A stretch of DNA of 64,000 bases from Marsupella aquatica (lineage: Eukaryota > Plantae > Marchantiophyta), in NCBI GenBank assembly GCA_973895155.1, contig OZ316899.1, forward strand, positions 2,379,573 to 2,443,572, read 5' to 3'. Of this stretch, positions 1 to 33,715 are shown one piece after another (the first letter of the stretch is position 1; every line of letters starts with the position of its first letter). Under the pieces are notes generated by a model that was not told where the DNA came from, did not search any database, and worked only from the letters and a program-made list of their open reading frames with translations. A program made the translations under genes and the position numbers.

Positions 1-1856
1 GTGCGTGCTCGGAAGAACTTTGTCGCGGGGATTAACACTAAAAGAAAGAAGCACTTACACATACACTTTTTATTAGTTAAACCAGTTTGGAGAGATCAGG
101 AACGACACATTAACGTATGAGGTAGAGGAGGAATTTTTTGCATAGTACTATAGCACGGGAGCTGCGACGCTATTTACCTTGTGAGACAGATCATATATGG
201 ACGCAGGAGCTGCTCGGTGTTTCTTGGGATTGCAAGTGTGCAATCTCACTTTGCGGATTTTTTACTTTGATTGCTCAAGGGCTAAGAATTTTTGAAGTAG
301 AGAAGGACAAAATAAGTGGGCTGAGGATGGATTGAGGTGAGATTGGAGGGAAGAGGAACGGGAACCGGGGAGTCATATGGTTGGACCTCACGGAGGAGAG
401 GATAGAAGGACTATGATGGAGAATGGGATGTTTGGCTAAACATAAATTGCATTTGGAGAATTGAGGAAGAAACGGAAGTAGAGCGAGAAGAAGAGGGAGC
501 AGGAAGTGAGGATCAAGAGTGGGCTCAAAGGATAGCAGGAGATTGTGAATGTGTCAGTGAGAAGGGAAGGTTGAGGTCACTCGGCCTTTGGTTTGGAAAC
601 ACGGGATCTGTTGCAAAGCAGGAAGCTGTTTGGAGACCGGACATGCAAGCTAGCAAAAGGCAGGAAGGGGACAAAGGAGAGAGGACAAGTAACGTGCTAA
701 TGCAAGGGGGAGAAGTAAGGTTGGAAGACGTGAATAAGGGGATTGGAGGGACTATTAACATTGCTGCTGCGTGGAGTGAGGATGGCTCGATTGAGCTATG
801 GGACTCTTCGCTACTGATTGTAGATTCACAGATGGAGGAGACTAGAGTGATAGTCATTGCCACACCACGGCGCCGTAAGGGGGGTAGTGTGAGCTTGGAA
901 ACCTCTTTGGGTGGGCAAATGCGGATTTAGTTACAGGGATCGGGGGCAGGGGGCTAAAGAGAATGATGGAAGGAATATTGAGGGTAGTGTCCTGGAATGT
1001 CTGTGGGCTCTGCGAACCAAATCGGAAAAATGTTGTGAAAAACTGGATTGCAGCTAGGAGGGAACGAATAGATGCATTGGCCCTGCAAGAAATTAAGGCG
1101 GATAAGTTCATACTTGATATGGCCATGAGAGTAATTCTGCCAATGTACCAATGTGTTGCATGGACACCTGAGGAAGGTTGGGGAGGCACGGCATTACTAA
1201 TACATCCGAATTACAGGCTGGTCACGTTCGGGGTGGTGGATAGGGGGCGAGCAGTATGGGCGATTGTAGAGTATCAGGACTGCAAATTTGGAATCCTGAG
1301 TGTTTACGCACCGAATTCTGCTTGCCTTAGAGCCATTTTGTGGCATGAGCTTAAAATGCATCTGCCTCAGGAAAACTGGATTGTATGCGGGGACTTTAAC
1401 ATGACCAAAATAAGGGAGGACTCCACTGGTGATTCGCCCATGATTAAGGGAAGAGAAGCAGAGTTTTGGCAATTTCTGAAAGTTAGATTCAATCTGGTGG
1501 ATACATTGCTAATCAAGGGCGAGGTACCAGGGGCGCGCTACACCTGGAGAAGGAGCAGGATGGGGTCTTTGGTCCAATCAAGATTGGATCGATTTTATCT
1601 TAGTGCAAACGGTGACTGGATTTATAAACTGGTTGATTTGGTGCTTGTTTCCTGGGCACATCTTTCACGTCCCAAGATGGATGGTGGACTGGGGCTCAAG
1701 GATTTCCGAAGTCACTTGGATGCGCTGTTATCAAAATGGTTTACCTGTGCAATGGATTACCCGAATACGGAATGGGCCAGAATGTTTGCAGAAAATCTTA
1801 ATCGGATTGGTTGGACTAACTATAAAGTGGTGCGGAGGAATGGATATACCTTCCGT
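1..1856 (+). mobile_element. L1-type LINE, 5' part (endonuclease, RT deleted, start of post-RT region)
   Basis: ORF 963-2012 has APE endonuclease motifs (SWNVCGL, LQEIK, VYAPN, GDFNM, SRLDRFY). It jumps directly to the post-RT motif VSWAHLSRPKMDGGLGL and is cut at 1856 by the DNA transposon. Confidence 0.9.
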
Positions 1857-1898
1857 CTTGGGGGGGTCACTTCCGCGGAAGTGACCCATCACGTGCGA
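1857..1898 (+). repeat. Left TIR (G7TCACT - 15 nt - CATCACGTGCGA)
   Basis: Both blocks match the reverse complement of 16754-16792 with identical 15-nt spacing. Contains the perfect 24-bp palindrome GGGTCACTTCCGCGGAAGTGACCC (1864-1887). Confidence 0.85.
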
Positions 1899-2629
1899 AG
1901 AAGTATAGGCCCTTTTAATTGGGTTGGGCGGAAGACTTCCAAAGATTTGTGGAAGAACAATAGGGGTTGTTTTATTATCTCGTCAACTTTTAAGAACTAT
2001 AGGCCCCCATAAATAGGGCTGCCTTCCATGGAAGGCATCCAGGTAAGTTAGGGGTTTTATGTATAACATTTTCATGCAACACGTGGCAGTTGCTAATTGG
2101 CACACATGGCACCTTCCAATTGCTACACCTGGATTCTCTAGGAAGTATGATGAACAATTGTCAATGAGTTTGGAGACTAAGTTTTGAAGTCGCCTTGCCC
2201 ATTTCAACATTCCAATTTTTGAGACTAGCAAGACACAATTATGTAGTACCCTTACTAATATCATACTATATCATACTAGGTTTAAATTGTTTTGGGGGCA
2301 GGGGAGGAGGGGGAGTGTATTGGTTTAGCCCCAATTTGAAACGAGTATAGTTTGAAATTTGGCAAGGGGTGGTTTGGGGGGTTTTGACACGGTTATTAGC
2401 AGCCGTTGGATCTCTAGGGTTTTTGGATCCAACGCACTACAATGCCTTGGGTAAGGGTGGCCGTCATAGTAAGGATTGAGGAGGGGGGCGATTGAGCTTG
2501 CGCAGGGAGGAGGGGGTCCATTGAGCTTGCGCGGGAGGAGGCCACACTCTAGCTTTTCCTGCTTCTGAGCTTGGGCGAGAGGAGGAAAGCATTTCGATGC
2601 TCGGGCGAGACTGAGGAGGAAAGTTGATT

Positions 2630-3130
2630 GATGATGCTGTTGCTCACCATCTCCAATTGCTATTGCTGCTGCTCACCATTGTTGTTGCTACTACGAGACC
2701 ATTGTCGTTGTTGTTGCTGCTGCTGTTGCTCACCATCTCCAATTGCTATTGTTGCTGCTCACCATTGTTGTTGCTACTACGAGACCATTGTCGTTGTTGC
2801 TGCTCGCCATCTCCTTCTGCTATTGCCACCATCGCACATTTATGCTTGTCGGGTGGCCTTGTGAGTGCTGCTCGCCATCTCCTTTTGCTACTGCCACCAT
2901 CGCACATTGTTGCTCACCACCGCCTTGTGAGTGTTGCTCGCCATTGTTGTTGCTGCTACTTGCCATCTCCTTTTGCTACTACCACCATCGCACATTGCTG
3001 CTCGCCACCGCCTTGTGAGTGCTACTCACTGCCACCAGGTTGCTTGCCGCTACTGTTGAGTTTATGTCCACCATTGCTTCTCGTTGTTGCCATCGCCACT
3101 GAGTTGTAGCTCGCCATTGAGTTGCAGCTC
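2630..3130. repeat. Degenerate TTG/CTG-rich tandem repeat region
   Basis: An ~87-bp duplication (gctgttgctcaccatctccaattgctattg...) and repeated ccttgtgagtgctgctcgcca units. Confidence 0.75.
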
Positions 3131-4532
3131 GCCATCAAAAGGTATGAATGAGTGTTGCGGTTGGCCATCCCTCACCTTGTATGCTTTGCGCTGGCTATCC
3201 TTCATCTCTTCAGCTCTGCTTTGCACTGTGCAGGGAGTCCATATCGGGACACTGCCAATCAATCAGCTGCCCTCCGGTCCGTGTCGGTCATTTTTCATAT
3301 TTGTAGTGTTTTTGCACTCACGTCCTCTCCTCTCTCTTTCCCCCCTACAGCTTTTAACGACAACATAGGGTTTGATTTCACCACCATTCGATTCCGGCCA
3401 TTCTCAGTAAAGGCTCCCGCTAGAACTAGTAACCGTTCAATCTCCCCTTCGTTCTTGTTTCTTTTGTACTTATTGGTTGAATCCTTTGTCGGCGCATTTC
3501 ACCCCTTTGTAGGACAACAGTCTATAGTCTTAAACTCAATACGAGTTTCTTTAGTTCTCTCAAGACTGGGCATTCTCTTTTGTTTTGTTTCTATTCTGGA
3601 ATGACCTCTCTCTTTCTTGCATGCGCTGACTGTCTGTCTATGTAGTCTCTACCACAGCAGTGACGAAGTTGCCTGTTGCTATTTTGCTGCATGCATAATC
3701 ACTGCTAGAATGCTTTGCTTTGTAATGTGCTCCAGCATTGTTGCCTTAATGCTTGTTGCTCTAAGATTCATTCTCGCCAAATTTTTCATCCGAGCCTTGC
3801 TGTGGAATGTCTGTGCATCCTGCTTTTGTCAAACTATCAATGATTTGATTTTGTGTCTATGTCAAAAGCAATTAGATTGAAATGTCAAATTGTATTCCCT
3901 TCCCGGTTGTTGCTTCTGAACTTTGGTCGCTTGTCTTCTATTACATAGACCGCCTTGAAATCGGCAGGTTGGCTTCAGAACAGTAGTTCGTTTGCAGCAA
4001 TTGAAAAGCTTTGAAGGAGGTGGATCAACTGTGGCATTTTTGAGTGTTGTTACTACCAAATTCCACTGCGAGGTAGGTATTTGGTAATTTATTTGGACAG
4101 CAAAATAGTAACTTGTTTGCTGTTAAGTAGAATGAGTTCACTTCAGTTTATTGAAACATATGAACATTGAGTTTGTTCCCATTTCTGTGTCATGCAGGTA
4201 CTGTGTGGTTGACCTTGGTACCATCTGCTTAGTTCAATATCTTCAGTAGGTTTGAAGTCTTGGCAAAGTGCATCCAGAAGCATAGGTATATTGAATAGAA
4301 CTGCATCCCAATTTGGTGGATTCAAATGTCCGTATGATTGTTAGGTTTTGCTTAAATTTGTGATGAACATTCAATCTGTTTCAGTGAACATGTTTATCCT
4401 TCCTTGCTTTAGTCTTATGTCTCTTTTGTGTTTGACGTGTGCAGAGACTTACGGTTGTAGTACCCACCTACTTGGAGTGCCCACGTAAGCTCCACTCTAT
4501 TACAGACATCCATAGTGACAGTTTAGCATTTA

Positions 4533-5133: not shown

Positions 5134-5830
5134 GTGGAGGTTTTGTTGAGGCCCCTGTTGAGGTTGATCCTTGTCCCTTGTTTGTTGTGGCCTTGTCATT
5201 TTGTTAGAGTTCACAAGCACAATCTCAGTCTAGGTGCACTGAAGATGGTTGTGACTCGCAACGCACTCTCTCAGTACCATCAACAGAAGGGTGAGCGATT
5301 TTGTTTGAAGATGATTCACAGTGGGGTCGTGCCTGTAGACTGTGCTGTCACTTGGGGCTATCCAAGTGTGCCTCGCAACCATTATAGAAGGCTGAATACA
5401 TCCCCACCAGTCCCAAACAGTATCCGTCTAGTTAAACAGACAGTTGGGGTGCTGGATGAGGACTGTGTCTTCTTGGAGGCTTGTCTCCATTGTCACACCC
5501 AGACATGTGATCGTTGTAGGCGAGGTGACTCAAACAGAGTGCAAACTTTTGCACAATACATGGCAAGAATGGCATGGGGTGGTTGCCTAGCATGGAATAC
5601 TTGTCATTTCATCAATGATTGTGTCTGTGGTGGGACACGTCCAGGTTCTGCCCATGATAATGATGCACATTCAAGTTGCTGACTTGTAATTCTGCATTGC
5701 TCACATTGCAGGATGGATCAAAGGAGCCCACAGGGAAGTGATGCCCCTGGTGGAGGCTACTGGCTGTGATTGCTGGTGGACTGTTGCTCCTTTTGGTACA
5801 TCACATGCCTGCCCCTAATTTTTGAAGGTA
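5134..5830 (+). pseudogene. Cys/His-rich decayed ORF, possible zinc finger or PHD remnant
   Basis: CLHCHTQTCDRC, and a downstream VDCCSFWYITCL segment after stops. Confidence 0.35.
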
Positions 5831-6547
5831 ATTTTGCAGATCTTGTTCAGCATGGCACACATTGCTCGTCAGTTGTTGGATCCAAGATTTGGGCATAGGG
5901 AGCACCTTTGTATGGATCCCCCTTGTTGTTTTCAATGTGATGAGGGAGGAACTGTTTTGTTCTGTGATGGCCCTTGTGGTTGCCATTTTCATTATGTAGT
6001 TGATGGCCACAACCCCAATGAAGAAGATGGCCATGGACCTACATGTGAGCGCATTGTCATTTCCAGAGGACATGATTGGGCTGCAACTTGGCTTTGTGAC
6101 CTATGTCAGCAAAATAGAGGAAGATGTTTTGGTTGTGGACTTCTTGGCAGAACCTTGAGACCCAGCACAGACGAGCCCCTTGTGGTCCAGTGTTCTCATG
6201 ATGACTGCTACTCTTTTTACCATGTGGGCTGTCTCCAACTACTTCTGCATTTGGGGGAAATGCCTGTCACCCGCCATCCAGATAACCCTGATGCACATCC
6301 CGATGCTCTTATATGTCCACAACATTACTGTGAGGTCTGTAAGGAGTATTGGGAGGGCATTTGGGATTTTGTCCAATGTTGTAGATGCCCTCGTGCATGG
6401 TGTCGTGATGAAGGACCAACAGCAAACAGGCACTTGAGGAGAGGGGTGAGGGGCCGAGACACCTGGGACATTGGACAGTGGCGCATGATTTACTGTAATC
6501 GCCATGTCATTCCAGAGGGTTTTGATATCCCTAGTACCCATGACTAG
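5822..6547 (+). CDS. Tandem PHD-like fingers, EDM2/NSD-type, transposon cargo
   Basis: CFQCDEGGTVLFCDGPCGCHFH...WLCDLC...CFGCGLLG...VVQCSHDDCYSFYHVGC...ICPQHYCEVC...CCRCPRAW follows the Cys/His spacing of the plant EDM2 triple-PHD region. Confidence 0.8.
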   Translation: MKVILQILFSMAHIARQLLDPRFGHREHLCMDPPCCFQCDEGGTVLFCDGPCGCHFHYVVDGHNPNEEDGHGPTCERIVISRGHDWAATWLCDLCQQNRGRCFGCGLLGRTLRPSTDEPLVVQCSHDDCYSFYHVGCLQLLLHLGEMPVTRHPDNPDAHPDALICPQHYCEVCKEYWEGIWDFVQCCRCPRAWCRDEGPTANRHLRRGVRGRDTWDIGQWRMIYCNRHVIPEGFDIPSTHD

Positions 6548-6615
6548 ACACATCTTATAACTTTCACCTTTTTTGGAGTGGACCCATAAGACAACCTAAA
6601 TTATATGAACTTAAG

Positions 6616-9600
6616 TGTGGTGCGTCCCATGGCTCCCTAAACCCAAGAAACCCCCCAGCTCAAGCCGATTCCCGCGGGTTTCGTGCTTGGCGAGGCCGTT
6701 TCCGCGGCTTAGCGGCATGGGACGCTGCTAACCTTCTACTACTACTATTAACATTTTACACACATATACTGGACAGATCCTTCATCGGGTCATGAGATAC
6801 GTAGCCGGCCTAATATAGGCCTTCCCCTGTCTTCCCCTGTCTTCCCCTCCGTCTTGTTAGGTATGTTTGGATTCCGCCGCCGGAATGATCCCCAATAGGC
6901 TTGGTTAAGCCGCTAAGACCTCTCTCAGCTCGACACATCCAACTCTCACTCCCCTGCTTACTTTCCTTCTTTCTGTTGATGTGGGCACTCTTCACACAAG
7001 TTAATGCGACACACAAATAGCAAAATGACTCATTCTGACTGAGTCATACCATGCACTTGCCATACAAACAGTACATCTCATACACAAGTTCTGCGAACTA
7101 AGCCGTGAGGCCAACTCTATTCAGCTCTTAGGCATGAGGAAACATGAATATACACAAGGGTCACTGTATGACTAACCGAGAGCTTCTCGTACTACTTGAT
7201 CCCAGCCCGGCTGGTGCAAACTAAAAACTTGCTAAAGAAGAGGCCCTGAGCTCCCCGCTGCCCAGGTACTTATCCTGGTAGTGGATCCGCCATTCTTTGC
7301 ATCGTAAGCCTAATCTACTTAACAGTAATCTACTTGCCCGAATCTACCTATGTACAGCAAGGCAGGAGCACAAGTGTTGCTCCTACCAGTGGGACCGCAA
7401 TCCCACTAAGCTAAGTGTCAGGGCCGCTCCTGGTTCTGATCCTAATCCTAAACGTGGAGATCCGTGCCCGCCCTGCCCACTCACGCCTCCTCCCTCCACG
7501 TCCGCCCTCCCTAAAAGGAACGGCGCCCTTGCACCGTCACGACACCGGTGGTGGATCCTCAATGGACGCCCCCAACACTTCCTCCTCAGCCACTGCCGTT
7601 GGCCCGCCTACTGACAGATTACCTGCCCTTGACCGAGTCAACTCTCCCTCGGCCTGACTGGGTCCACCTTCGGCTTCAGCCTCGACACCGGCCTCGGCAA
7701 TACCCACGGCTTCGGCTTCAGCCACCCCCACGGCTTCGGCTTCAGCCACTCCCTCGGCTTCGGCCTCCCCTTCCCCTAGGGTAGTTGGATCCTTAGCTGT
7801 GACCCTGTCTGGGGTCGGTGCCGGGTCTACCTCCTTGATCACCACGGCCTGTGAAGTCGTATTACTCCTTGACCCTGAAGGTTTCCGCTTCTTCTTCGTT
7901 GGTGGCTCGGCAGCTGGTCCCTTCCCCTTCCCACTTACCTCCGGCACTGGTGCAGGTGGCGCGGCTTGTCCTTCGGCAATTACCACCCCTGGTAACTGGT
8001 TTGTCCCAACAGGAGATGGACCTGCTGCAGCTAAGCATTTAAATACTGCGGCTTGTTTCTTCAGCCGCTCTGTTTGGTTGTCGGCCCGCCGCTGTAGGTT
8101 CTCCATCTTCCTCGTGATTTCCTCCAACTCCTCTTGGGTTTCATCCAGGTCCTTACGTGCCCCCTCCAGCTCGTTTTTGGCCTCCTCCTGCTCCCTGTGG
8201 GCTTCCTCCAATTCCTTCTTCAAGGTAGCCTTCTCCTCCTGGGTTGCTCTTAGCTCCTTGTCGAGCTCTGCAATGATGACAGACTCCATCTGGTTCATCT
8301 TGGCGTAAGTCTGTTCGAGCATCTCGTCCTTCTCCCTTAGGTCGGCCTTGAAGCTGGCCGTCAGGGACGCAAGCTCCTGCTGCAGCGCCATAATCCCTTG
8401 ATAGGATTTCCCTAACTCGACCTCCTTCTACTCAAGGGCTCCGCGGATTTTCTCGAGCTCCCCTTTCAACGCCCATTCCTTTCTTTGGGTCTCCGCCATG
8501 GCCCGGCTGTTGGCTGTTATGTGGGCCTCCTCTGTATTCTTCAGCTCTTGCTTCCACTTTTCCCTTTCTTTGATCGTGTCGGCCAACTCTTCCTGCGTCT
8601 GAGTCAGTTTATCCTTGATATTCTGATTATCAGCCTGCGCGGCGTCCAACTGCCCCCGCATGATGTTCAGCTCATGTCGTTTAATCCGCAGTTCATCTTG
8701 GGCTTTCTTGGCCGCCCTTAGATCTTCAATCTCGGCTTCCATCCTCCTAAGCCGCCGAATGACCTCGTCCTTCTTGCTTCTCTCTAAAGCCACCGCTTCT
8801 TCTAATTGGTGCTTCTCCAACTGCTCCCTATGGAAAAAGGGTCCTACCTCCAACTCCTCTCCAAAGATGCCGAGCGCAAGTTCCCCACACATCTCACCAT
8901 ACTCCATGGCTCTATTCTTAGCGTAGGTGGAGTAAGTAGAAGTGATCGGCATCGCCCATCGTGGCCTCTGCTCCCAAGCCGTCCTGCGGATCTCTTCAAT
9001 CGTGGCTAGAGGTTTGCTTCCTTTTTCGGCTAGCCGCCTGATGTCCTCCGGCCAATCTCCTCCTGGTAAATCCTTTTCCTTAGCCAGGGCGGCCTCTTCC
9101 TCCTGCTTGATTCGCTCCTGAAATTCCTGCACCGTCTGTTTTATGCCGTCGAAGCTCGGGGGAGCAACATCTGGTGGGGGAGACTCAGGGCTACTCTGCT
9201 GGTTGGGGTCCCCTCGCACTACCCTTGGAAGTGTGGGGACAAACCGGCCACAGGTCCTTACTCCTGGAACGTGATGGTCCGACCCATAGCCGGAATTATC
9301 ATGGCTGCAGTCCTCCACTGCCTCCTCTACCTCTTGGATTTCCGGCTTCTCCCTCTCCTCTTCCTCGGTAGGAGCTTCAGGCAATTCTGCCTCAGATTCG
9401 GAGCTTGAGGTTCCCACGTACATTCGAACACCTGGCTTGGATTCCGGCCTGATTCTCTCGTCTCCAGCAAAGGGGTTTTCTCTTGTGAGCCGGTGTAGGC
9501 CTACCTCTGTAGTAGTGTCCTGCATGGTTGCCGTTGCCGTTGTTGTTGCCGATGCCGATTTCTTTTCTTTCTCCAGTAGTTTCAGCAGACTCTGCATGCC

Positions 9601-11272
9601 TGGTTGCTGCATTGGCAAGTCTTCCTTCCTGGGCCTAAACACCTGCTCGATCGTAGGACTAACAGGTGGTTGAGGCTTCTCAGCCAACGGCCTCGGCGTT
9701 GGAGCTTCCTCGGGTGCCCTTACCTGCAGGGGAAGTACCGGGGCAAAAGTCTGACCTCTGGCATACCGGCACAACAGCGGCATGTGATAGCCAAGCCGCG
9801 ACACGCTCCCCATGCCGATTACCTGCTGCTCCTCCTTTAAGATCTTCTTCAATTGGTTGAGGAGGTACCCGTTGTAGTCCCGGCTTGGGTCTGGCCTTTC
9901 TGCCAGATAGACCTGTGCCTTGCCGATCTCTGCCCTCGGCAAGTTACAATGCATGGTCACCCGCAAGAAGTCGATCATCTCTCCTATGTGCGGGTTGGTG
10001 CAGGTGTTCCGGAAGAAGCCATTCTTCGTTGATGGCCCGGGGAACGACCGGAACTCCTTGTCAGGCAAGGTCTTCCTGGTATCAACTTTGGTCTTATTGC
10101 CCATCGGCAAGCCAAACACTTCGGCAATCACCTTGGGAGTAAGATAGAAATCCTTCCCATATATCCTCGTGCAATTGGTCTCGGGTTCCCATGACCCCAC
10201 GAATTCTAATAGGTCTGACTCCGGTACCTCCGGCTTCAGCCATGGTAATCTTACAAAGGCCTCCAAGCCGGATCCGGCCATGAAGCCTTGGTACTTCTTG
10301 GTCTGCATGGCCGTAAAGCATGCATCCTCCTCCCGTGCAAAATGTAGTTGCACCTCCACCGGTAGGGTTGCCGCCCAGCCCTTCCAGGTGTCATCCCTGG
10401 TTGGAATGGCCTTGATGGGATCGACCTCCTCCTCTTCGGCTTCTCCCTGCCTCCTGCTCTGCTGCTCGGCTGGCTTCTTTGGTGCCGTCGACCTCGTTCT
10501 TTTTGCCGGGGTGGCTTCATCGTTGACGGCTCCCTTCCTCTTCATCTCTGCTGCCGTGGAGGTTTCTCCTAGCACCGTTGCCTGGGTCCACCTTTCCGTG
10601 CTACCCTTTAATTCCCAGTGTATGTCGTTGCAGTTCTTGATGGCCTCTCGGATGCCGACGACGCTGTCCTTGCAAAACAGAAGATCGTCGAGTTGATTGG
10701 AAGTAGGCGTCCACAGGAACTCGTCCTTGATGAGTTCGCCTCCTAAGAAAGCCGTCTTCTGCAGCTCCCACAATCGAGCGAGCTCCTGCCGTTCTCGAGC
10801 TGCCCTTTCTGACTCCTCGTCCTCGTAAGTCTTGATGTACTCAGTTGCCCGTTCGAACAGGCATCCCCAGAAATGTGCCGCTTGATTGACGTTGCTCATA
10901 CCCTCCTTAGGTTGATCGTCGGTATCTACTCTCTCCCCGAGTGCTTGCCTAAGCAGCTGACAGTAGTTGGCCTCCCGTAGTCGTCTGCCTAGTTCGTGCT
11001 CGCAAATGAGCCACCATCTCCTGCAAGCGCTCCTTACCCCTCTCCTCTGCCGGTCCTTCTTCCCGTTGATCCTTCCTAGCCGCCGACGCTTAACGCGCCC
11101 TAACCCTAATCGGGTTTTCACCCTCAGCCTTACCTCCGGCCTCTGCCCGGGTTCCATGGTTGCCCCTAATTGTTTATATTTTCCTTGTTTTGTCACTATA
11201 CTAAGGTGTTCCTAGGGTGCCTTCCTGCTTTACCCACTTAACCGGCCGAGTGATTCCTGTCTAGGCATCACA
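6616..11272 (-). mobile_element. Giant Gypsy solo LTR, family A copy 1 (4657 bp)
   Basis: TGTGG...TCACA ends. TSD TTAAG at 6611-6615 and 11273-11277. Colinear second copy at 30079-38759. No internal terminal repeats and no gag/pol. Confidence 0.88.
7537..11196 (-). CDS. LTR-encoded ~1200-aa protein (basic N-terminus, PMD/Transposase_32-like domain, long coiled coil) with one premature stop at 8428-8430
   Basis: ORFs 8428-11196 and 7537-8391 are in frame. Copy 2 reads GALEQKEAEL where this copy has GALE*KEVEL. Motif LLEFVGSWEPET...LTPKVIAEVFGLP. Confidence 0.8.
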
Positions 11273-11381
11273 TTAAGTATTTGGTTGAATGCTATGGACT
11301 TAAGTACTTGGTTGAATGATGTGGACTTAAGTATTTGGTTGAATGAAATGGACTTAAGTACTTGGTTAAATGAAAATGGAC
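11273..11381. repeat. 4 x 27-28 bp tandem repeat (TTAAGTAYTTGGTTRAATG...TGGAC)
   Basis: Units start at 11273, 11300, 11327 and 11354. Confidence 0.9.
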
Positions 11382-11570
11382 TGTAACAAAGTGGACTCAC
11401 TGAAGTGTTTTATTCACTCCAATGGATTGAGTTTAGAGTTGAGTGAATTATGCTAGTTGTGAATGGTTCAAACAAGTCCTGATCCTTTTCCATCTCTGTC
11501 CATTGTTGTATGACAGGTTCATCTACCTGATCCCTGTCCCTCACTTTCACAGCCTGTATAACTGTCCATC

Positions 11571-14500
11571 ATGGCAAACCTAGGCATGAGCACTGTCAGA
11601 TTGGTAGAAAAGGGTGAGGAGGGAGGAAAGCCTGATACGCCAATCTGTGTCATGTCCTTCAAAGAAGGGCAGACTTTGGCAGACTTCCGTACCAAATGTG
11701 TTGGTGCAGTACAGTTTGACTTTGATTTTTGGGATGAGAGGTTGCCTGGTCGAGTTCGTCGCTTTTCAGAGAAGACGGTTGGGGTGACTGAACTTCAAGG
11801 GACAGTTTATGTGATTGCACAGTTACCCTCACTTGCCTTGCCTCCTGAGAGGGTCACTATTGGTTCCTCTCATTCATCTGCTGCCACTGTGTCCAATGTG
11901 GCAGGCACGCCTCCATTGTCTCAAGGACAAACTCAAGGGGTGCCAATACAGGCTACTGTACAGCCTGTGACAGGCTCCTTTGAGTCTCACCTCATGTCTG
12001 AGGTTGCATCAAAGACCTGGAATGATGAGTGATTGAAGTTACGATCCTGGGTAAACCAGAAGGGCTTCTGTGACCACAAGTGGAGAGTGCGGACGTGGGA
12101 TGAGGAGGGGAGTGTCAAGGGCATCTAGAGTGCTTAGAGTGTAGGGAGACTTATGGGAATGCAGCCAATTCACAGGTGCTCAAGTCCATTGCCAACTTCT
12201 TTAGCAATTTCAAGACAAAGCACCTGACCAACCCTAAACACAAGGAGAATTGGTGTAAGCGAAGGGGTTTACCAGGAGCTCTGGTGACAGCTGCTTACAC
12301 TATACAGCAGCCATTGTTTGATCATAGTATGCAAATAGGGGCTGGGGTGGAAATAGTGGGAAAGTTGAATGCAGAGGTAGGTGGGGTGGTAGAAGTGTTT
12401 ACTATCACACCATCTCCCACTGATCCAACATTTGCACAAAGGTCATTCTTGTTTAAGGTCAGATGTACAGTCTGTGGCAAGCTACATACTGACATGTGCC
12501 CTAAGAAATCCAATTTGGAACACAATTTAAGACAACACCTGGTGAGTCGGGATCATATGGATGCACTTGAGAGCGTTGTGACCAGTACCCAGGCTGCACT
12601 GAGGGCAAGGAAGAAGGGGAGACCAAGGAAGCCTGATGCTCGTGATCTGTTTCCATCTCAAAATTCTATTTTGAATTTCTTTAGAGAGGACAGCTCTGCT
12701 GCAGGGAGCAGTTCAGGCAGAAGTGGGTATTCCTCTATTGAGCCAAGTGTCAGTTTGCTTTGTTGGGGCATGTGGGAGTCAGAGGTCAAGTGGACAGGGG
12801 ATTCTATGGCTGTGAAGGGCATACTTGATGATCAGGAGGGAGGAAATGTCTGGGACTATGATCGTACAGCCTGTGCTGAGGTTTTCAATGTAACTAGCTA
12901 GTCAGTTGTACATATACAAGGTTGTTTTAGGCACACGCAATGTCACAGGGTGTCCATTAATGGAGGTGGTTTTCAGAATCTCACTTGCACTCTATGTGAT
13001 TCTATAAAATGTGAAGATGATTTTCATGGCAAGGTGCACAGGGAAGCGGAAGCTTTAGTGCATAGAGGAGAAAGAACTACACATGGTGGGATGAGGTTGG
13101 CATACTTGACCAAAACCGAATTGAGGGAACATGTTGGTAACCTCACCACTCGCTTTAGGAAACAACGTTGGCTGTTGGCACAACAAGCTCAGAAAATTTG
13201 TGCCCTGAGTGTTAGGCGAAAGAAGCTAGAAGATTTATTAGGAGTAGCCCATGATAGGAAAGATTTAAGACTGTTTTTGAGGAATATAGTGAATGGACAT
13301 AGGTGTGGTGCTTTTGGTGGCAAGGAAGGGTTGTGGGATTTCTTGACAGATGTAGCCAAGAACTTGCAGAGAGTTGCTAAGGGTTATCGTTATAGTAAGA
13401 GAACCAAGGCCTTTTCCCAAGCCATGTTCCAGTTTGGAGGTAGACAAGTGGCCCATTGTTTCCAGGCAAACCTAGGTGGTCCAGGTCTGAAGACCTTGAA
13501 ACATGATAGAGCAAAACTACCACCCTTTAGACCTGGCATTCGCAAAGAGATATTCCAGGAGGTATGCAGAGTACTATGTGCATCAAAGCAGTCACTTGGA
13601 ATTTCAGAAGATGTACCAGTAATGTTTGCAGAGGATGAAACAAGGATAAAAGAGAGACCCACGTTTATGTTTTTGTCTCTGCCGTAAATTAGCTTCTTCT
13701 TTTGAATGTGTTGGGTGATCTTGCAAGTCATGAGCTAATGTCGGTATTGTATTGTGTGTGACATATGGGAAGCTAAATATGACACCCTCATTGGTTTCTG
13801 TGGCCCCTTAGAAGAGCACACATGTTCTTTTGGCTTGGAAGTACTCGTTGGAGCAGGTACTGAAGGGTATGACAAGATTGTAAGTACTTTTGAGCAGTAT
13901 GCCAAAGGCATGTATGCTAGAGTAATCATTGTCAATCCTTTGCATGCAAAGGTGCCTAAATTGGCATTGTGTGTTCTACCAACATGTAACAAGTTTAAAG
14001 CTACCTGGGTAAGAGAGCATTGGGTGCAGCTAAAGTCCATGTGGGACACACATTGCAGAGATAGTGTTGGTCCTTTGTTGGGCCATGCTAGTGATGGTGA
14101 TGCTCGTTGCAGGAAATTGATGATGGAAGATTATACTGCTGTGAATGGTTCCTTTCCTAGGTACAGTGTGGGATGGGTTGGGTGGCAATACTCAGTGTCC
14201 ATACTTCCGAATGGAGATCTATATGGTTTTGGAGACCAAGACCCACCTCACAATGGCAAGAAGGCAATTAACCCATTGGACCGAGTGTCTGCTATGTTAG
14301 TTCTTGGTGATCAGCATGCATCTTTGTCATATGTCACATCTGTTTATAACCATTATGCAATTCACGAGCATGGTTTGCATTGGGATGATGTGAATAGGAT
14401 AGATAGACAAAATTGGGCTGGCCCACAACGAATAGCTTCCAGGAGAGTGCAGGCCTGCCTGCAGCATATGTATGAGCGACGAGATGTTTGTCATGACAGA

Positions 14501-24620: not shown

Positions 24621-24758
24621 TGTTGTAACCTAAGTTAACCCAGGGTCAAGTCTACTACAGTCAGGCTAGTCATAACCGCCTAACTGCCTAGCTACCTAAG
24701 GAACCATATGTATTGGTTGGACGATGAATGAAGCATTAGTTGTTGACACACCACAACA

Positions 24759-24772
24759 CGTTATCAGCACGA
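24759..24772 (+). promoter_or_regulatory. Primer binding site CGTTATCAGCACGA (half-tRNA type)
   Basis: Directly after the 5' LTR. No TGG. Complementary to UCGUGCU-IAU-AACG, the recalled tRNA-Ile anticodon arm. Confidence 0.65.
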
Positions 24773-27700
24773 GGCTCCTTGCCTTAATTTTTTTCTCCCT
24801 TTGTTTTTTTACTCAGATTTCATAGATGATTCATGACCACCAAAGAATGGAGGAACAGGGTCATGGACTAAGGAGATCGACCATCTATCAATAGACCACC
24901 TACAGAACCTCCGCGGAGAGACAAGGCACCAAAGGCCAAAATCATAAGTGAATCACAAACAAGTACTTGATTGCAAGAGGACGAGGGCAATTAGAACCAT
25001 CGGGAGAGTAAACGCGAGCCAACACAGAGCTCACCAACTTCAATTTACATAGAAAGAACCACCATACAAAAATATCATCAATCCTACACATTTAGTAGGA
25101 TGTCAATCCCCACAAACCCCATCGAAAAACTCCTATTTCAAGCCCTCAGTATAGACAACGCTAATTACTTATCCTGGACCTTAGACGTAGAAGCACACCT
25201 CGCAGCTAAGGATCTCCAGGACACGATCATAATAGATGCAAGAACAACTTTATAGCAAAAGGCAAAAGCCTTGATACTAATCCGACACCACTTAAGCGAC
25301 TCCGTGAAAAGACAATACTTGAACAAATTCAATCCGTGAGTACTCTGGGAGGAGCTTCAATCCCGCTTTGACCACACTCAAACCATTTACCTGCCAGCTG
25401 CACAACATGACTGGATTAATTTGAGAGTTCAAGATTACAAGATGATTGCAGACTACAATAGCGAGCTATTCAGAATCGTAGCGCAATTGGCAAATTGCGG
25501 TCAGCCAATAAACGACGCGGAGCAAATAAAAAAGACGCTATCTACTCTACACTACGAATACTCCAAACTAATCGCCCACATGCTTCTGGTTGAGAAGCAC
25601 CAACTCCTATTACTACAAAATGCACAGAAGCGACCCCCAGGAACCCTCCCTCCACATACAACTCCAGAAACCAACTATGCAGAACCACAAAGGGGAGAGG
25701 GAACATCTTACCGAGACTGGGGAGGTAGCAGAGGGAGAGGCCCCTACAGGGGCCGAGGAACTAATTCCCAACGCGGCGGAAGAGGAAACTTCTCACGTGG
25801 ATGAGGACGAGGCAGATACCGATATAATGGAGGGAGCTCGAGAAGTACCTGGAAACGAGATAACAACAATCAGCCCCTGACAAAGTTCAACCAAGAGCAA
25901 TACAACCCACAAGATAAAATTGAACACCCTGCTCTCTATTTTTGTTGTGGAACTAAAGGGCACATCCAGAAAACATGTCGAGCCCCTATACACCTAGTGG
26001 CACTCTATAAGAAAAGCATCACAACAAATGAACCCGAAACATATGGAACATTTATGGACTCTACGGAGATCCTGACTGAGATAAATATGATTGGCCACAA
26101 GGAACCCCATAAAAACACCAGTCGACCCTTCCTACTGTATAGTCGACAATGGGACCTCACATTCTATCTTGAAAAATAAAGAATACTTCACTCACATAAC
26201 ACGATGGGCCAACATCAATTGGAGGAAGGATTTGGACTGGCAACGGTGATCCTACCTCAAGGGACACCCATAAAAATACACTCGGCCATTTACGCACCCA
26301 GAGCAACGAGAAACCTGATAAGCTTCGGAGACATAAGAGCCAACAACCTGCATATAGAGACGGGAACCTCAAATGAACGAGAAGTCCTACACATAACGTC
26401 CAAGACACCAACGAACAAGGGAATCTTGGAGACACTAGATGCAACCCCTCCCAAATTTTACGTCACAAACATACAGAGCTTCCAAACCGAAACTCACAAT
26501 AATACTGTTACCAAGATTTGGCACAGGAGGCTCGGCCACCTTGGCCTTAACATGTTTCAGAGGATTATTAAACAAACCAAGGGCATACCAACCACGATAC
26601 ACCCCACATCCATGCAAGAGCCGCGCCTAGCATGCTCACAGGGAAAACTGATAATTTGGCCTTCCCCATCAACAATTGAAAGCCGAATCCCCAACTTTTT
26701 GGAGTGGATACACGCTGGTGTCTGCGGACCCATAGATCCCCCCAGCGGCCCATTTTGTTTCTTCCTAGTAGTCATAGACGCATCTACCAAATGGTCCCAA
26801 ATTTCCCTCCTATCCACACGAAACTTAGTGTTCTCCCGTCTCCTATCTCATATCCTAAAACTGAAAGCACAATTTCCGGATAACCACATTCGGACACTCA
26901 AAGTAGATAACGCAGGGGAATTTACCTCTAAAACTTTCAAAGAATTTTGTACTGCTACAGGAATAGACGTACAGTACCCGGTCCCCCACGTACACTTCCA
27001 GAATGGGACAGCAAAATCCTTGATAAAATGCCTCCAGATAATTGCTAGGCCACTATTAATGCAGTGTAACCTCCCCACAACAGCATGGGGACATGCAATT
27101 CTCCACTCCACCACACTGCTGAGCTATAGACCATCAGCATTTAACTCTAGTTCACCCCACCACCTGGCATTCGGCAATATTCCAAATGTCTCCCACCTGA
27201 GGACGTTCGGTTGCCAAGTAATGGTACCAATCTTGGGCCCCAAGCGAACAAAGATGGGCCCTCAGAGACAACCAGGCATATATACTGGATGTGACTCCAC
27301 ATCAATTATTCGCTACTTGGAACCAACCACATCCGATGTATTCAAAGCACGCTTCGTAGACAGCCATTTCTATGAAGACACCTTCCCGAGATTACATACG
27401 AAACAGTAAATGGATAAAGTGGAATGGCTCGATATAGGTTTATGTAAGAAACTTGTCATTTTTTTGCTTTTTGAACAAGGAATAGTAAGAAAGACGTTTT
27501 AAGTGCTATCGGAGTAACTAGGTTTTAGGAACTTAAGTAGGTAGAATAGGAAAGATAGTGGAATGGAAGGTTACTGAGTTGTAAGCAAGTGACAAGGGAT
27601 AAGAAAGGTCTTTATGATGGGGCATACAACGTTCCGTCCTTATTTAGAATAGGCGACTATTTCGAGTCGGAGAAACAACCCGACACTTGAAGTCTTAGTT

Positions 27701-28619
27701 TTGGTTCAAATTTTTCTCATAGATGCTAGGAGGTCCCTAGAGCACCCCTAAAAAGTTAGATGTCAAAGTGGGGTCTCAACCTAGGTGTTTTGGTGTTTCC
27801 TTGTGTTTTGGTGCGACTTAAATTAACAAAATAGCGGGTCCCGGGAAAAATAGCTGATGAGTAAATTTAGGAGTTCCAAGTTTGGGAGTGGGTGAAATAT
27901 GGTCCACTATATCCTTGGGAACTTGTGGTAGAACTTGGTTATCTTTGGTTGCTTTTTGGGAGCATCTCAAAGTTGAGAAGAATTTTGGAAAACATAACAA
28001 TTAACACTCTTTACCTAATTTTAGAAAATTGGTTATAAAGTTTTGTTTAGATATTAATAAACCAGTACATAGGCCTATGTCCAGAGAATATGTGTATCTA
28101 CTCAGAAGTCATTTTGGACTCATGGGTGATTTTTTGGGGAAATCCAAAACAGCCTGGAAATGCAGTTTTTTCCAGAAAAACCAACATTTTTTCTCTAAGT
28201 GTTGGAATGACGACGCGCAAGCTACGACTCAAGCATGAGGCCGATGAGGAAGTCAAGCACGAGTAGGCTGTCCAAAGGTGCTGCATGTTGCTTGAGGTGC
28301 CAATTGAGCACAAGGGCGGCTGAATTGAAGGAAGGGCGGCTGAATTGAAGGACGGGATGCTTGAATTGAAATGGCTGCTACTGCGAATTGAAGAGCTATA
28401 GCTGCTGAGAAGGAATAGAGCTATGGTTGCAAATTAGGATTGCTGCTAGTTGCGAAATTGACTAGGTTGGCTGTGAGCTATGGCTGGATGTGGGCTGTCG
28501 CTGCTGATGAATTGAAGAGCTACGAGTTATGGCTGCTGAAGAAGTAGCTATTCTGGCTGTTGGAGAATTAGAGCTATGGAGGATTGACATGCTGCTGGAC
28601 AATCCTCTTGTGAACCAAG

Positions 28620-28620
<1 letters not shown>

Positions 28621-28670
<50 letters not shown>
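28621..28670. repeat. (CT)25 microsatellite
   Basis: Read directly. Confidence 0.97.
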
Positions 28671-28672
<2 letters not shown>

Positions 28673-30994
28673 GTAAACATAATTCCCTTCATAAGCACGA
28701 GAGTCTCCCCTGGTGACACCTGGAATCTCCATAAGGGGCATGTAAAGTAAGTGTAATTGGGTTGCCACTTACACCCACTTTACACCAAAAACAGGCCTTG
28801 GGAGAATGGGCATAACTTTGGCTAGGGGTAGCCATTGGGGCCCAATTTTTTTTGTGCTGAGTTAGGGGAAGGTAAGGCACCCCTTGGTGAAGGTGGAAAC
28901 CCAGAAAAAGAATCACTCAAATATATTTTTAGCCGAGGCCATGAGGGGGGTCCCGATAGCTTGCAAACCAAAGTCGGCATAGGGGGAATGAATACCAGAT
29001 TTAGGGGCTGACTATCTTGCATCCATACCACTTTAGTTAGGCTCTAGAGAAGGGTACTTACCTTTGGTCAAGGCTATAAGGTCATAAAGTTAAGAGAAGT
29101 AAAGTATAGGGGATAGTTTACTTAGGGTAGTAAAAGGGTTACAAGTAAAATAAGGCCAACTTTGACTTAGCATAACTTGAGACTCACTCACTCTTTTTGC
29201 GAGATTTCAAGTGGGTTGGAAATATGGTGAGGAGGGCCATAAGTATGAGCAGGTTTGGAGGTCAAAGCATGCAACTCATGTGTGGCATATTCCAGGGCTT
29301 GGAAGAGGCAAAACAGCAAGTAGTAGGGTGGGCTACGAACTATAGAGTTGGACTTTGTGTGTTAGGAGGACTTGGGGGAGGTGCAGTTGGACCCCAGGTT
29401 GAGCTTGGTTGGTGTGGAAGGAGAATAGTATAAGAGGAGGAAGTTTTCCTTTGTTAGGGACTGGGAGTCTCATCTCTTAAGTGGAATCTCTACCTTGCCA
29501 AGGTAGGGCTAAGCTTGAGAAGGGAGAGGTGGTCCATGCTTAGTGTGGAAAATGTGTAGTGAACTTTTGTTGTAAAGGTGATACAATAAAATGAGACTTG
29601 TCAATCTTCATTGTGACCATTAAGTGTGAGTGCATTTGAAGTGTATGAGATCAAGAGAAGAGTCCATGCTATGGTGTAATCTTGGTCTAAGCTCAAAGGG
29701 GATGTGCTAGTACAAAACCAAGGCCAAGGAGGCAAAGTTAAGGTAGAGCACTACTTTGAGACTTAGAAAGGATTATAGCTTGAGGGTGGAAAGTAGTTTG
29801 TTTGGTGTGTGGTGTTAACAAGAAGTAAGAACAAGAGGAAGAGTCCTTAGATAGAGGAGCCTTCTCTAGCTAGTGCTCAAAGGGGATGTGTGGACCCAAA
29901 CCAAGGCCAGGGGGGCAAGGTTGAGGAGTAACACTACTTCGAGGGTCTTGAGGAGACTTAAGCTTGAAGAGGAAAGTACTTTGGGTTCTTGGATGTTTGT
30001 GTGAGAATCTACTCTAAGGTGACAGCTTGGAGTGGAGATCCCCCTCGTTGATCCTTGGAGTAGAGGAGAGGGGAAGGATGTGGTGCGTCCCATGGCTCCT
30101 GTCACGTCATCGGCTGCGGCCTTAACTCAGACTTCAGCTTAGACGGGCACATCCCTCATAAATCTGAGGGTTCGGGCAGGAAGGGAAGCACGTAATGCAC
30201 CTTATTCTCGTAAACTAGCGCTAAGTGCGCATACTGCTAAATATGGACACCTCCTAGGTATGGTTTGTGTTCCGCCGCCGGAACGTACCTTAGTCGATAG
30301 CAAGATCGACCCCGGCTTAAGGGCTTCTAAGCCTTCGTGCTGTCCGCCTTCGATCCAGATTCGATGATACAGGTCCTCAACCCGTGCTCGCAACCACTTA
30401 CCCGCAGGCTGCACCCTGTGCACGTCTCGGGTAGTGCGTTCGGCCTGGCGCTGCCACCCATATACGAGAAACCCACACACATACACGCGCACATGCATAC
30501 AATCTCGATTTACACGAAGGAAAATGATGGGAAAGGATTTTACTACAAAGGGAACATATGCGTACACTTAGTTGACCCGACAGCCCCGGAATGAACAGGT
30601 TCAAGGCCGAGGGTGCACACTACAACGGAGCCCGGCTCCGCACTCACCCGGCGAGCTTAGTCCTACCCCCTCCCCTTGGTACTCTTTCATTCCCAGAGGT
30701 CGGGACTCCCCGCACCTACCGCGGACGCCCAACTCTGCAACTAAAAACCCCCTGCCTCTACCGAGGGGTGCACTAAATACTAAGGGACGAGGGACGGGGT
30801 GTCCTCTCGCCGAAGATTCGCTGACTAAGGTCCTAACTAAGCTGACAGTCAGGCCGGAAAACGGCTATGTCTTATTAGAAGATCCTAATTTACGCAGGCT
30901 GGACAGCAGGGCAGCGCTGCTGTACCTAAGGCAGGTGCCTGTCCCAAGAGCCTGACTAAGCCAGTCCTAATCCTAATCTATTCCTACTCCGCTG

Positions 30995-33616
30995 CTAATG
31001 CCTGGCACGCTTGCCAGAGCCGCCCGAATGGGAGCGGCCATCCCGCTGCCTTCGAAGCCTGTCATTGTCCGCCTTGAGGAGCTGGACCTGGTCCAGCAGA
31101 GATTCGTTCTCTCGCCTCGCCGCGTCCGTCTCCTCTGTTGCCTCCTGACAAGCCTCCTCCAGCTGTTGGGCGTCACTTGTCAGTTTACCCGCCAGCTGGT
31201 CCTGCTTCTCGGCCTCGGTTTGGAGCCGCGCCACCTCGGCCTGCAGCGTGGCTATCTCCGCCGTGTCCCGTTGGGCTCGTTCCTCGGCCTCCTCCAGGTC
31301 TTTCTGCCAGGTGACAATTTGATTCTTCAAACTGTCAATCTGGTTCCGGAGTCGTGTAATCTCGGCCTCGTTCCCAGCTTTGGCCTGTTCGGCTAGGGCG
31401 GTAAGAGTGTGCGCCTTTGCTAACAACTCATCGGCGGCTGCAACCTTGGGTCGTAGTTGCAGAAGCTCAGCCTCTTGAGCCGCAACTTCGTTCTTTAGGT
31501 ACACGGACTCCACCCGGTACCGCTCTATCCTCTGAAGGGCCTCTGACTGGGCCGACCTGCCTTTACTGCGGCAACCAACTCCTGATTGAAGAAACAGGCT
31601 ACCTTTCGGGCCATGAACTCCCCGGTATCCCGGGCAATTTGATGAGAAAAATCTCCCAGAAGCCCGTTCAGAAATGTACCCGGTACGAAGAGTTCCGGGT
31701 GGTCCAGGTTGTGCCTGTCCGGAGTTGGGCACGGGCAGACATCAACACGCGCGGGGGCCGGGGCAGTGACGTCCAGCCCTGGGGACGTAACGTTGGAAGG
31801 GGCTGGAGTGTCCTCCTGCAGCAATGTCCGGTTCTCCGGAATAGCCACCGGTGGGTCTTTGGGAGACCCTGGCTCGGGTAAGACCTCCGTCGTACCGACT
31901 TCTGTACTTAGCCCGGCCTGTTGGGTCGCATCAACGGTTGCGACGACCGACCCATGCGGTACCTCTTCGGTTACGACTACAGCTACTTGTGGAGGTGGGG
32001 TGGGTGAAGCTTGCGTGTCCGCTGGACTTCGGGCCTCGGGTTGGGGCCGTCTCTCCAAGGCCGAGAAAACCCACCTAGCTGGGACCAGCTTTGTAACGTT
32101 GACACGGGGAAGGGTTCGTCGATCAAACTGGGCGTACCACTCAAGAATGATCTCGATGTGGCTAGCGAAATATGCCTTCTGCCAATGTACAGCGTCTTCC
32201 TTCGCCGCTCCATCTCTTCATGGAATTTCTTAGCGAAGTACGACGCCCACCTCCTAGGTCGATAGTTCTCGACCTGGATAACCTGGGTGGCGGAGATCTC
32301 CCCCCGGGGTTCCATCATGTGGAGGGCGTACCTCTGGAACTCCAGTCACTCAGCTGTCTCGGGGATGAGGCAGGTCTTCATCACAAACCCGTTGTCCACT
32401 GCTCCCTCTGAGGGAAAACTTGAAGATTGGTACTTGGCTCCCTTGCCCCCGGGAGCCCGTGATTTGACTCGATGGTCACCTTCGGGTAACCCGAAGATCA
32501 TCCTGAGCCGTTCTTTTGTGAGGGACATACTCCTTCCCCGCAGCCGAGTATGTTGACGCGCGTCGTCATAATTCCTGACGAACTCCGTCATGTCCTCCCC
32601 GTAGTACCTGCAAGTGTTCCAGGGGAGGGAGGCGAGGTGCTCGAATCCCTGAGTCTTCAGGTACACCGCATGCTTGGGATGGAGGATGTTTTTGTGAACG
32701 TTTTCCCCCATGCGGTGCATCGTCACCTTGGCCATGGCTACCGTGGCCAACGGTAACCCGGATGTAGTGGCGGATTCCTTCCTCTTCTTCCCCGTGACTG
32801 GCTCGGGGAAGGTGACACCTCCCCATCCTCCCGATCGGGCCTGGATAGTGCCACTGCCGTTAGTAACGGGCCTGGGGCGGCCATGGTCACCATGTTGTCT
32901 GCCAGGGCCGCTCCTGGGGTCAAAGCAGGGGGTGGGGACGATATAGTGTCGGCCCCCTGAGCGCTTGTTCCTCTGGGCCGCCTGGTCAAGGGTAGGGTAG
33001 CCTCGTCGTCATCGCTAAGATCCACAGCGTTGATGACGGAGCGTACTTGTGTTGGCTGGGCGATCGGTGGTGGGGTTTGGCTAGGCTGCGGCTGAGGCTG
33101 AAGCTGAGCCTGAGGTTGTATGGATACGGGTACGACTGAGTTGGTCATGTTGGTTGCTGGCCGAGTTCCTATGAAGCTCTGTAGGTGCTGGTAGAAGTTC
33201 TCCGAAGCGAGTGCAGACGACCTTGTCGAACGGATAGTGCTGGACTCGCTGTTGATGATAGCCCGAACCTGAGCAGGGATGTGGTCAAAGTGATGTCGTT
33301 GCAAGTCGATCGTACCCGGGATATTGAAGAGCTCGTCCGGAAGCCGAAGCAATGCTTCCCAGAACCCGATATATTTGTCTCCGTTGAAGAAGTACCCAGA
33401 TACCTCTGCTGGTCGATAAAGCTCGCTCTGAGACGGGTAGTCAAAGTTAAGGATGTAGTGGTGTCGTCCTGCTAGGCGGATGGCTCTCTCGTACTCGCGT
33501 TCGATTTCGTATCGGTGCGGGTTGGCGTGTTTCAATGAGTCGGCCAAGTGCCTTCCGGTAGATAGGAACTGCGTCCAGAATCGAATGGCTGAGCTGGAGA
33601 GGATCGTGTGCGACAT
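30995..33616 (-). pseudogene. Family B LTR-encoded ORF set (orphan N-terminal domain, PMD/Transposase_32-like domain, coiled coil), frameshifted
   Basis: ORFs 32738-33616, 32346-32750 (LASLPW...EFVRNY...LTKERLRMIFGLPEG), 31983-32318, 31525-32058 and 30995-31732 (coiled coil). Confidence 0.7.
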
Positions 33617-33715
33617 TCAGAGGAGATAGTAGTGGCGACTTAGAGCGAACGAGAGAGCTAGGGTCGAAGCTGGCGTGTGGACTGATGGACTGGTGCACTA
33701 CAAAGGGTTGGCTCC

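Follow-up and report, generated by a model that had tools for sequence, protein, structure and literature searches.

A complete gene inside the long terminal repeats of probable Ty3/Gypsy elements in the liverwort Marsupella aquatica

The extra open reading frames (ORFs) of plant long terminal repeat (LTR) retrotransposons have been placed in the internal region of these elements (PMC6317226, PMC7264820). A PMD domain is found in 57% of Ogre elements and a Transposase_28 domain in 23% of Retand elements, and the LTRs reach up to about 5 kb (PMC6317226, PMC7264820). The PMD protein MAIN is structurally homologous to VANC, and VANC21 is a coiled-coil dimer, according to an atlas of Arabidopsis transposon proteins (PMC13547354); VANC proteins target short motifs that form arrays in non-coding DNA of their element (PMC5735166, PMC10398659). 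Open-access full text was searched for ORFs or genes within LTRs; the cases that came up were retroviral, none of them from plants. A 2026 study of Tat elements, those of liverworts among them, makes no mention of such LTR ORFs. Here we describe a 64,000-nucleotide stretch of the genome of the liverwort Marsupella aquatica (contig OZ316899.1, positions 2,379,573 to 2,443,572; hereafter the window) that contains three lone units, A1, A2 and B. These are probably solo LTRs of Ty3/Gypsy elements whose LTR holds a complete accessory gene.

The three units, read as LTRs, and the target site duplication (TSD) of the first are placed as follows.

6616-11272, minus strand: A1, a 4,657-bp solo LTR of family A; its ends and TSD were read straight from the sequence.
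Left 6611-6615 and right 11273-11277, no strand: TSD TTAAG of A1, read directly.
30079-38759 (30079-30099 plus 34084-38759), minus strand: A2, second solo LTR of family A, with TSD AAGGA and three in-frame stops; B is nested in it, and it lies inside a Copia element.
30100-34083, minus strand: B, a 3,984-bp solo LTR that belongs to a second family, TSD GCTCC; its homologous gene is laid out in the same way but has decayed.

An earlier note on this DNA had claimed two independent TG..CA insertions with the duplications TTAAG and AAGGA, and both the ends and the duplications can indeed be read directly, the AAGGA copies lying at 30074-30078 and 38760-38764. On the ORF strand A1 begins with TGTGATGCC and ends with CACCACA; on the forward strand it starts with TGTGG and ends with CACA. 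The termini are TGTG..CACA in A1 and A2 and TGTC..CACA in B, that is, TG..CA with a short terminal inverted repeat. A1 and A2 are 91-94% identical. B splits A2 21 bp from the plus-strand start of the latter, and its target GCTCC is present as a single, unduplicated copy at the matching place in A1. Since each unit has LTR-type ends and its own 5-bp duplication, different in each case (TTAAG, AAGGA, GCTCC), A1, A2 and B represent three independent insertions.

The same note had taken the 4.7-kb unit for a solo LTR without internal repeats or gag/pol, and this reading held. Between the 700 bp at either end of A1, and likewise of B, direct repeats do not exceed chance-level matches (18 nt or fewer in A1), so that neither is a small element with short LTRs. 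A1, A2 and B contain no gag or pol domain. A solo LTR with the whole gene inside is the best reading of the unit and is supported by these data.

The link to Gypsy elements is visible in the window itself, at a further copy of the B family.

59000-60115, minus strand: B2, truncated 3' LTR of the B family; it is immediately preceded by the integrase end and polypurine tract (60119-60128) of a Gypsy element that occupies 60116-64000.

The RNase H-integrase ORF of this Gypsy element (60652-61731, minus strand) leads into the purine-rich tract at 60119-60128, after which B2 begins, from 60115. Over 844 bp, B2 and B are 66% identical, and their alignment stops exactly at both unit starts. B2 contains the N-terminal part of the homologous gene before breaking off near 59000. 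A1 and B have identical first nine bases on the ORF strand (TGTGATGCC), nearly shared by L002, a relative of family A from another species (see below); for family A, we infer the pol-tract-LTR junction from these nine terminal nucleotides only.

The integrase of the element that ends in B2 has its best database matches among proteins of Calypogeia fissa (63% identity). The junction of pol end, tract and TGTGA is found again at L003, L005 and L008 of C. fissa and at the merged locus L010+L009. In L003, L005 and L008 the homologous gene is found in the 5' LTR and the repeat restarts right after the integrase, but sequence stops 1.3-1.6 kb into the 3' LTR, so that these loci alone do not show repetition of the whole ORF. 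The merged locus, in which L010 and L009 were joined via an identical 2,615-bp overlap, carries gag, reverse transcriptase (RT) and integrase between a 4,623-bp 5' LTR and a 4,401-bp 3' LTR. The two LTRs are 96% identical, have matching ends (the last 30 nt are the same) and are flanked by the TSD CATGG. The homologous ORF, of about 830 codons, is complete in each. In this C. fissa element gag lies within about 350 nt of the LTR end, and two families have a conserved block behind the LTR end.

The element of the merged locus sits in the ORF of an older LTR of its own family and has itself received a 5-kb solo LTR of another family (TSD AAGAG), which bears a homologous ORF and contains no head-to-tail repeats. 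The claim that the gene would be duplicated in each element and survive solo-LTR formation is therefore borne out by the presence of the whole ORF in both C. fissa LTRs and in solo LTRs. Being in the LTR and in sense orientation, the gene is copied twice per insertion and remains in solo LTRs; the LTRs of these families are 4-5 kb long because a complete accessory gene, oriented as gag-pol, lies inside them.

At the same merged locus the older C. fissa element is cut off by a satellite array (33313-38531; period about 70 bp) that starts with telomere-like AACCCTAAAC. Two other candidates from C. fissa were rejected: L001, whose repeats lack TG..CA ends and which contains no homologous ORF, was set aside, and L004/L005 were ruled out as an LTR pair, being 370 kb apart in opposite orientation as a segmental duplication.

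The gene itself is best followed in A1.

7540-10899, minus strand: LTR-borne gene of A1, 1,119 sense codons from a conserved ATG (MSNVNQ), with an in-frame TAG at 8428-8430.

It had been described as one long ORF of about 1200 amino acids filling some 80% of the unit. A real gene is indeed present, albeit with 1,119 sense codons and 72% of the A1 unit (about 3.4 kb), and with stops in both copies. The minus-strand frame of A1 is open from 11196 to 7540 except for the TAG at 8428-8430. The A2 gene uses the same frame and is collinear with that of A1, with three in-frame stops; two of the four stops in A1 and A2 are single C-to-T changes. Translation of the A1 gene likely started at the ATG at 10899, judging by the start motif MSNVNQ, which is kept as MSKVNQ in L002 and has similar counterparts at the starts of B and B2. 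The ATG at 11157, which would add 86 codons, was ruled out as the start, as it is not conserved in L002 and the extension shows 7 non-synonymous versus 1 synonymous change between A1 and A2. This ratio suggests that the 86 upstream codons are probably leader.

A comparison of non-synonymous with synonymous divergence (dN/dS) between A1 and A2, proposed in the earlier note, gave 0.32 for the whole ORF and 0.15 for its central domain, as against 1.23 and 1.14 in the other two frames. Insertions and deletions between the two copies are multiples of three in all 6 cases inside the ORF, versus 2 of 9 outside it (Fisher p about 0.006, calculated by hand). The low dN/dS and the frame-preserving indels indicate that purifying selection acted on the gene while the A1 and A2 lineages were diverging. 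The ORF of A1 and A2 is a real gene, formerly under purifying selection, and its stops are later damage that disabled both copies.

Divergence between A1 and A2 is unevenly distributed. It amounts to 1.4-6% in the first 2.4 kb and 1.4-3% in the last 750 bp, and rises to 13-23% in places within the linker, the coiled coil and the tail. The non-coding ends are more conserved than synonymous sites in the ORF (dS 0.20). Strong constraint on cis elements could explain this, as could fast evolution of some protein segments or recombination between subfamilies.

A word-based homologue search with the 922-aa ORF of A1 returned no match. HMMER, given the first 470 residues, detected 24 relatives (best E 1.5e-49), several of them from C. 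fissa; in the A1 protein queries the in-frame stop was read as X. Homologues occur in at least three LTR families and in other species. The B gene, despite several frameshifts, has an N-terminal region, central domain and coiled coil in the order seen in A1, and its central domain is 27.5% identical to that of A1 (E 1.35e-13). L002, a Logan contig of run SRR18067441, contains a family-A relative at 447-3697, with the LTR start TGTGATACC at 447, flanked by AT-rich DNA, and the ATG at 885; its protein is 37% identical to that of A1 across 432 aligned residues. As L002 comes from another species, family A is not confined to one genome.

Three regions of the protein can be delimited on A1.

10570-10899, minus strand: N-terminal helical domain, about residues 1-110; AlphaFold pLDDT (predicted local distance difference test) 77-93 over most of it.
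9736-10404, minus strand: central domain with a predicted VANC21/PMD-like fold, residues 166-388; model pLDDT 86.9, pTM (predicted template modelling score) 0.85; dN/dS 0.15.
8020-8832, minus strand: coiled-coil region, about residues 690-960, with many weak Pfam matches to coiled-coil families.

The AlphaFold model made with the family alignment has a helical N-terminal domain, a disordered basic linker, a confident central domain (166-388) and then disorder; the pLDDT and pTM listed for the central domain were obtained when it was modelled alone. The N-terminal domain is conserved in B, B2 and the distant homologues P0125, P0127 and P0130. The coiled-coil region includes the segments most divergent between A1 and A2 and is followed, down to 7540, by an Ala/Glu-rich repeat tail. 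On A1, Pfam matched weak coiled-coil families only, in the C-terminal third, and B gave coiled-coil matches too. Six C. fissa members (e.g. P0157) match bZIP_1 in the zipper/coiled-coil part (best E 6.3e-06), which may point to a basic-zipper module for DNA binding or dimerisation in some families; this match was not seen in the window copies.

When the central domain model was compared with 48,161 representative chains of solved structure, the complex of VANC21 with its target DNA stood out with Z 8.5 over 207 of 236 residues (root-mean-square deviation 4.2), the next-best chain of this exhaustive search reaching Z 2.3. Re-examination of the Foldseek list gave VANC21 a Z of 8.9 over 213 residues. 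Among the predicted structures of the ESM Atlas, the domain matches PMD, DUF7745, Transposase_32 and DUF1985 clusters (TM 0.58-0.71). At the level of sequence the picture is different: PF10536, PF04195, PF20167 and PF09331 gave no match for A1, A2, B or 42 family members even at E up to 1, and the family profile retrieved only coiled-coil noise, and no VANC21, from the PDB sequences. The PMD-like motif that had been proposed from the letters thus survives as a VANC21/PMD-type fold match (Z 8.5-8.9, Atlas TM 0.58-0.71), whereas Pfam does not detect it. According to the models, the central domain is PMD-like at the fold level, a likeness that is not demonstrable at the sequence level.

The gene is bordered on either side by non-coding LTR sequence.

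10900-11272, minus strand: 5' non-coding part of the A1 LTR, the integrase-recognised end plus probable promoter and leader; 4.6% divergence from A2.
6616-7536, minus strand: 3' non-coding part (921 bp) of the A1 LTR, the part that differs least between A1 and A2; 3.1% divergence.

A scan of A1 for strict TATA and AATAAA signals located neither a promoter nor a poly(A) site. B and B2 have a conserved 11-base block in common that includes a TATA box; it lies some 360 nt from the LTR start and some 100 nt ahead of the ATG. Taken at face value, this would place the ORF in R/U5 or give the gene its own promoter. In one C. fissa LTR the sole strict TATA box lies 480 bp downstream of the ORF; it would put the ORF in U3, as in sag of mouse mammary tumour virus (MMTV).

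The non-coding LTR parts of C. fissa are packed with short motifs. GGCTTA occurs 22 times versus 0.6 expected in one family, and CGCTTA/AAGCGC 29-38 times (CGCTTA 29-32 times) versus about 0.5 in two others, the background being the non-LTR DNA of the window. Families other than the GGCTTA one have the motif (A)AGCGCTTA. These arrays stand at 35-70 times background and are nearly absent from the ORFs. The dense parts are 7241-8037 and 10519-11863 of the merged locus L010+L009, 9016-9991 and 12449-14150 of L008, and 8739-9916 of L003. Enrichment is weaker in the window, where TTAGG occurs 13 times versus 2.1 expected in A1 (both non-coding parts together) and CTTAG 13 times versus 2.3 in B. As the pattern was noticed by eye before testing, it is only a lead.

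What might such a protein do? It is possible, though by somewhat less than an even chance, that it is a dimeric DNA-binding factor acting on the non-coding parts of its own LTR. This role is favoured because the only solved relative of the predicted fold is such a protein, a coiled coil follows the domain, and the C. fissa LTRs are packed with motifs. The regulator would bind family-specific motifs, of the TTAGG/CTTAG type in the window LTRs and GGCTTA or AAGCGCTTA arrays in C. fissa. It could then switch on transcription or oppose silencing, in the way that VANC21 works for VANDAL21, and every LTR would be a self-contained promoter-plus-gene cassette. A more daring version has an LTR-borne anti-silencing or self-activating factor of VANC/PMD fold bind the motif arrays of its own LTR, the solo LTRs staying on as trans-acting helpers. 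We consider this speculative, at roughly one chance in several. If true, it would be the retrotransposon counterpart of the VANDAL VANC system, and it might represent an early form of the Ogre PMD ORF and a possible source of host PMD genes.

Several observations weigh against the interpretation given so far. The functional proposal is drawn from the fold alone, and Foldseek, while ranking VANC21 first, does so weakly (E 0.5-0.6). Pfam PMD, DUF1985 and Transposase_28/32 gave no match in 42 aligned family members. The TATA boxes give hints on the position of the gene that conflict between families. Motif enrichment is modest in the window's own copies, quite apart from the pattern having been spotted by eye. 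No full-length element of family A was seen in the 64-kb window; the search for an element bounded by two such units, suggested in the earlier note, succeeded with the C. fissa relative (LTRs of 4,623 and 4,401 bp), whose protein is about 20-28% identical. Nor was a tRNA-matching primer binding site, including one of the initiator-Met type, found next to the LTR ends in the window and the loci; ARAGORN detected no tRNA gene in the window.

Of the alternatives, the one that survives best accepts the LTRs as described and assigns the protein another task, either in particle assembly or nuclear export, as a structural protein or one that handles RNA (cf. ORF1 and Cer1 CERV), or as a tether to host chromatin proteins. 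Half of the protein consists of a long disordered region plus the coiled coil, the PMD proteins MAIN and MAIL1 work via protein partners (PMC7156037), and many host contacts are typical of accessory transposon proteins (PMC13547354); the modest motif enrichment in the window LTRs would also fit a role other than regulation. However, the only solved structure of the fold is that of a sequence-specific DNA binder crystallised with its target DNA, the strong family-specific arrays of C. fissa resemble the VANC target arrays (PMC5735166), and six homologues have matches to bZIP-like basic zippers. We regard this alternative as a serious minority view, only a little less likely than the DNA-binding dimer.

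A distinctly improbable alternative is that the 4-5-kb units are mobile elements themselves, single-LTR DNA with a gene of its own that is copied, and inserted in trans by a Gypsy integrase, instead of being a remnant of LTR-LTR recombination. It draws on the fact that the window has three lone units with clean duplications and one unit joined to pol, and each unit could be a promoter-plus-gene cassette. Yet no replication mechanism for a lone LTR is known, unequal recombination already accounts for lone LTRs with intact duplications, and the same kind of unit bounds both ends of the complete C. fissa element. Less credible still is the view that the units are LARD-like (large retrotransposon derivative) deletion products of short-LTR elements with an internal ORF, which would agree with the internal location of the described plant accessory ORFs, that of the Ogre PMD ORF included (PMC6317226, PMC7264820). 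This view, for which the earlier note had looked to relatives with short LTRs and the ORF outside them, is largely refuted: A1, B and the C. fissa solo unit lack head-to-tail repeats, the first base of the unit directly follows the polypurine tract, and in the complete C. fissa element the opposite was found, namely two LTR copies of 4.6 and 4.4 kb within the duplication CATGG, each with the whole ORF and with the last 30 nt equal at both. Finally, a chance frame in GC-rich repeat DNA, or a relic never important to the element, might be suggested by the stops in both copies, the missing Pfam family match and the empty word-based search, but is refuted by the selection tests (dN/dS 0.32 versus 1.1-1.2 in the control frames, indels that keep the frame) unless the alignment is an artefact, and homologues in at least three LTR families and other species as well as a confident domain model (pLDDT 86.9) further speak against what is the least believable reading of all.

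The surroundings of the units are rich in other mobile DNA. A2, with B inside, is hosted by a complete Copia element (24621-41898), between its integrase (26204-27409) and RT (39578-40744). The Copia LTRs, of 138 bp (24621-24758 and 41761-41898), are 97.9% identical and flanked by the TSD AGAAG, and CGTTATCAGCAC after the 5' LTR may be a primer site of the half-tRNA type. Because A2 sits in the Copia element and B in A2, the order of insertion was Copia, A2, B. Next to A1 lies a short tandem array (11273-11373) of units of about 27 bp, each with ACTTAAGTA; the TTAAG target of A1 is within the first of these units. On the other side, an ORF with an NSD-type PHD finger (E 4.6e-08; 5822-6547) stops 69 bp before A1. 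A second Gypsy element (48322-58121, minus strand; integrase at 49510-50520) has a primer-site-like TGGTATCAGGGT at 58121, and self-comparison of the window revealed no LTR pair for it; it seems to fill the place where the B2 LTR breaks off near 59000. An endonuclease ORF of the LINE (long interspersed nuclear element) type is located at 963-2012.

The new point is that a Gypsy accessory gene with a PMD-type fold is located inside the LTR, a layout that we have not found described for plant retrotransposons in the open-access literature. With a selected gene of about 1,100 codons, an LTR or a solo LTR can be a transportable gene cassette, beyond its functions as promoter and terminator. Such a gene is doubled with each insertion and is not lost by LTR-LTR recombination. 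In this early-diverging lineage of land plants the protein is a candidate factor by which a retrotransposon could counter silencing or regulate itself, and it connects the PMD/VANC fold with Gypsy elements beyond the seed plants. There is also a warning for annotation, in that 'hypothetical proteins' of liverworts can be LTR genes; the C. fissa homologues have all been deposited as unnamed protein products.

Among known systems, the Ogre/Tat elements with their eORF-5'F (Neumann et al. 2019, PMC6317226) are similar in being non-chromovirus-like Gypsy elements with LTRs up to about 5 kb and 5-bp duplications, and in having a sense accessory ORF with a PMD-type fold upstream of gag. Unlike that of Ogre, which is internal and downstream of the primer binding site, the ORF described here is inside the LTR (A1, A2, B and both C. 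fissa LTRs), occurs in two copies per element and is retained by solo LTRs. The liverwort protein also differs in falling below the Pfam PMD thresholds and in its long coiled coil. The host is a liverwort, a group of which the Ogre survey makes no mention (PMC6317226).

VANC21 of VANDAL21 (PDB 9lnj/9lnk; PMC5735166, PMC10398659) is likewise an accessory protein of a transposon, with a matching fold (Z 8.5-8.9). It dimerises via a coiled coil, and the LTR-borne protein has a coiled coil after its central domain; motif arrays like those of VANC are also present in the C. fissa LTRs. In contrast to the liverwort gene, VANC21 belongs to a Mutator-like DNA transposon of Arabidopsis, a dicot system, and with a sequence identity of 8-10% and no similarity at the level of hidden Markov models the likeness comes from the predicted fold.

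The host proteins MAIN and MAIL1 (PMC5418596, PMC7156037) share the PMD-type fold, as indicated by predicted-structure matches together with the published homology of VANC and MAIN. However, they are encoded by single-copy host genes that silence transposons with PP7L, whereas the gene described here is transposon-borne, multi-copy and has extra domains. As for location, the nearest parallel is MMTV sag, together with nef of human immunodeficiency virus and foamy virus accessory sequences overlapping U3: in each, a coding gene in the LTR is duplicated at both ends of the provirus. Those are much shorter ORFs of vertebrate viruses, in or overlapping U3, while the liverwort gene extends over some 3.4 kb, or 72% of its LTR.

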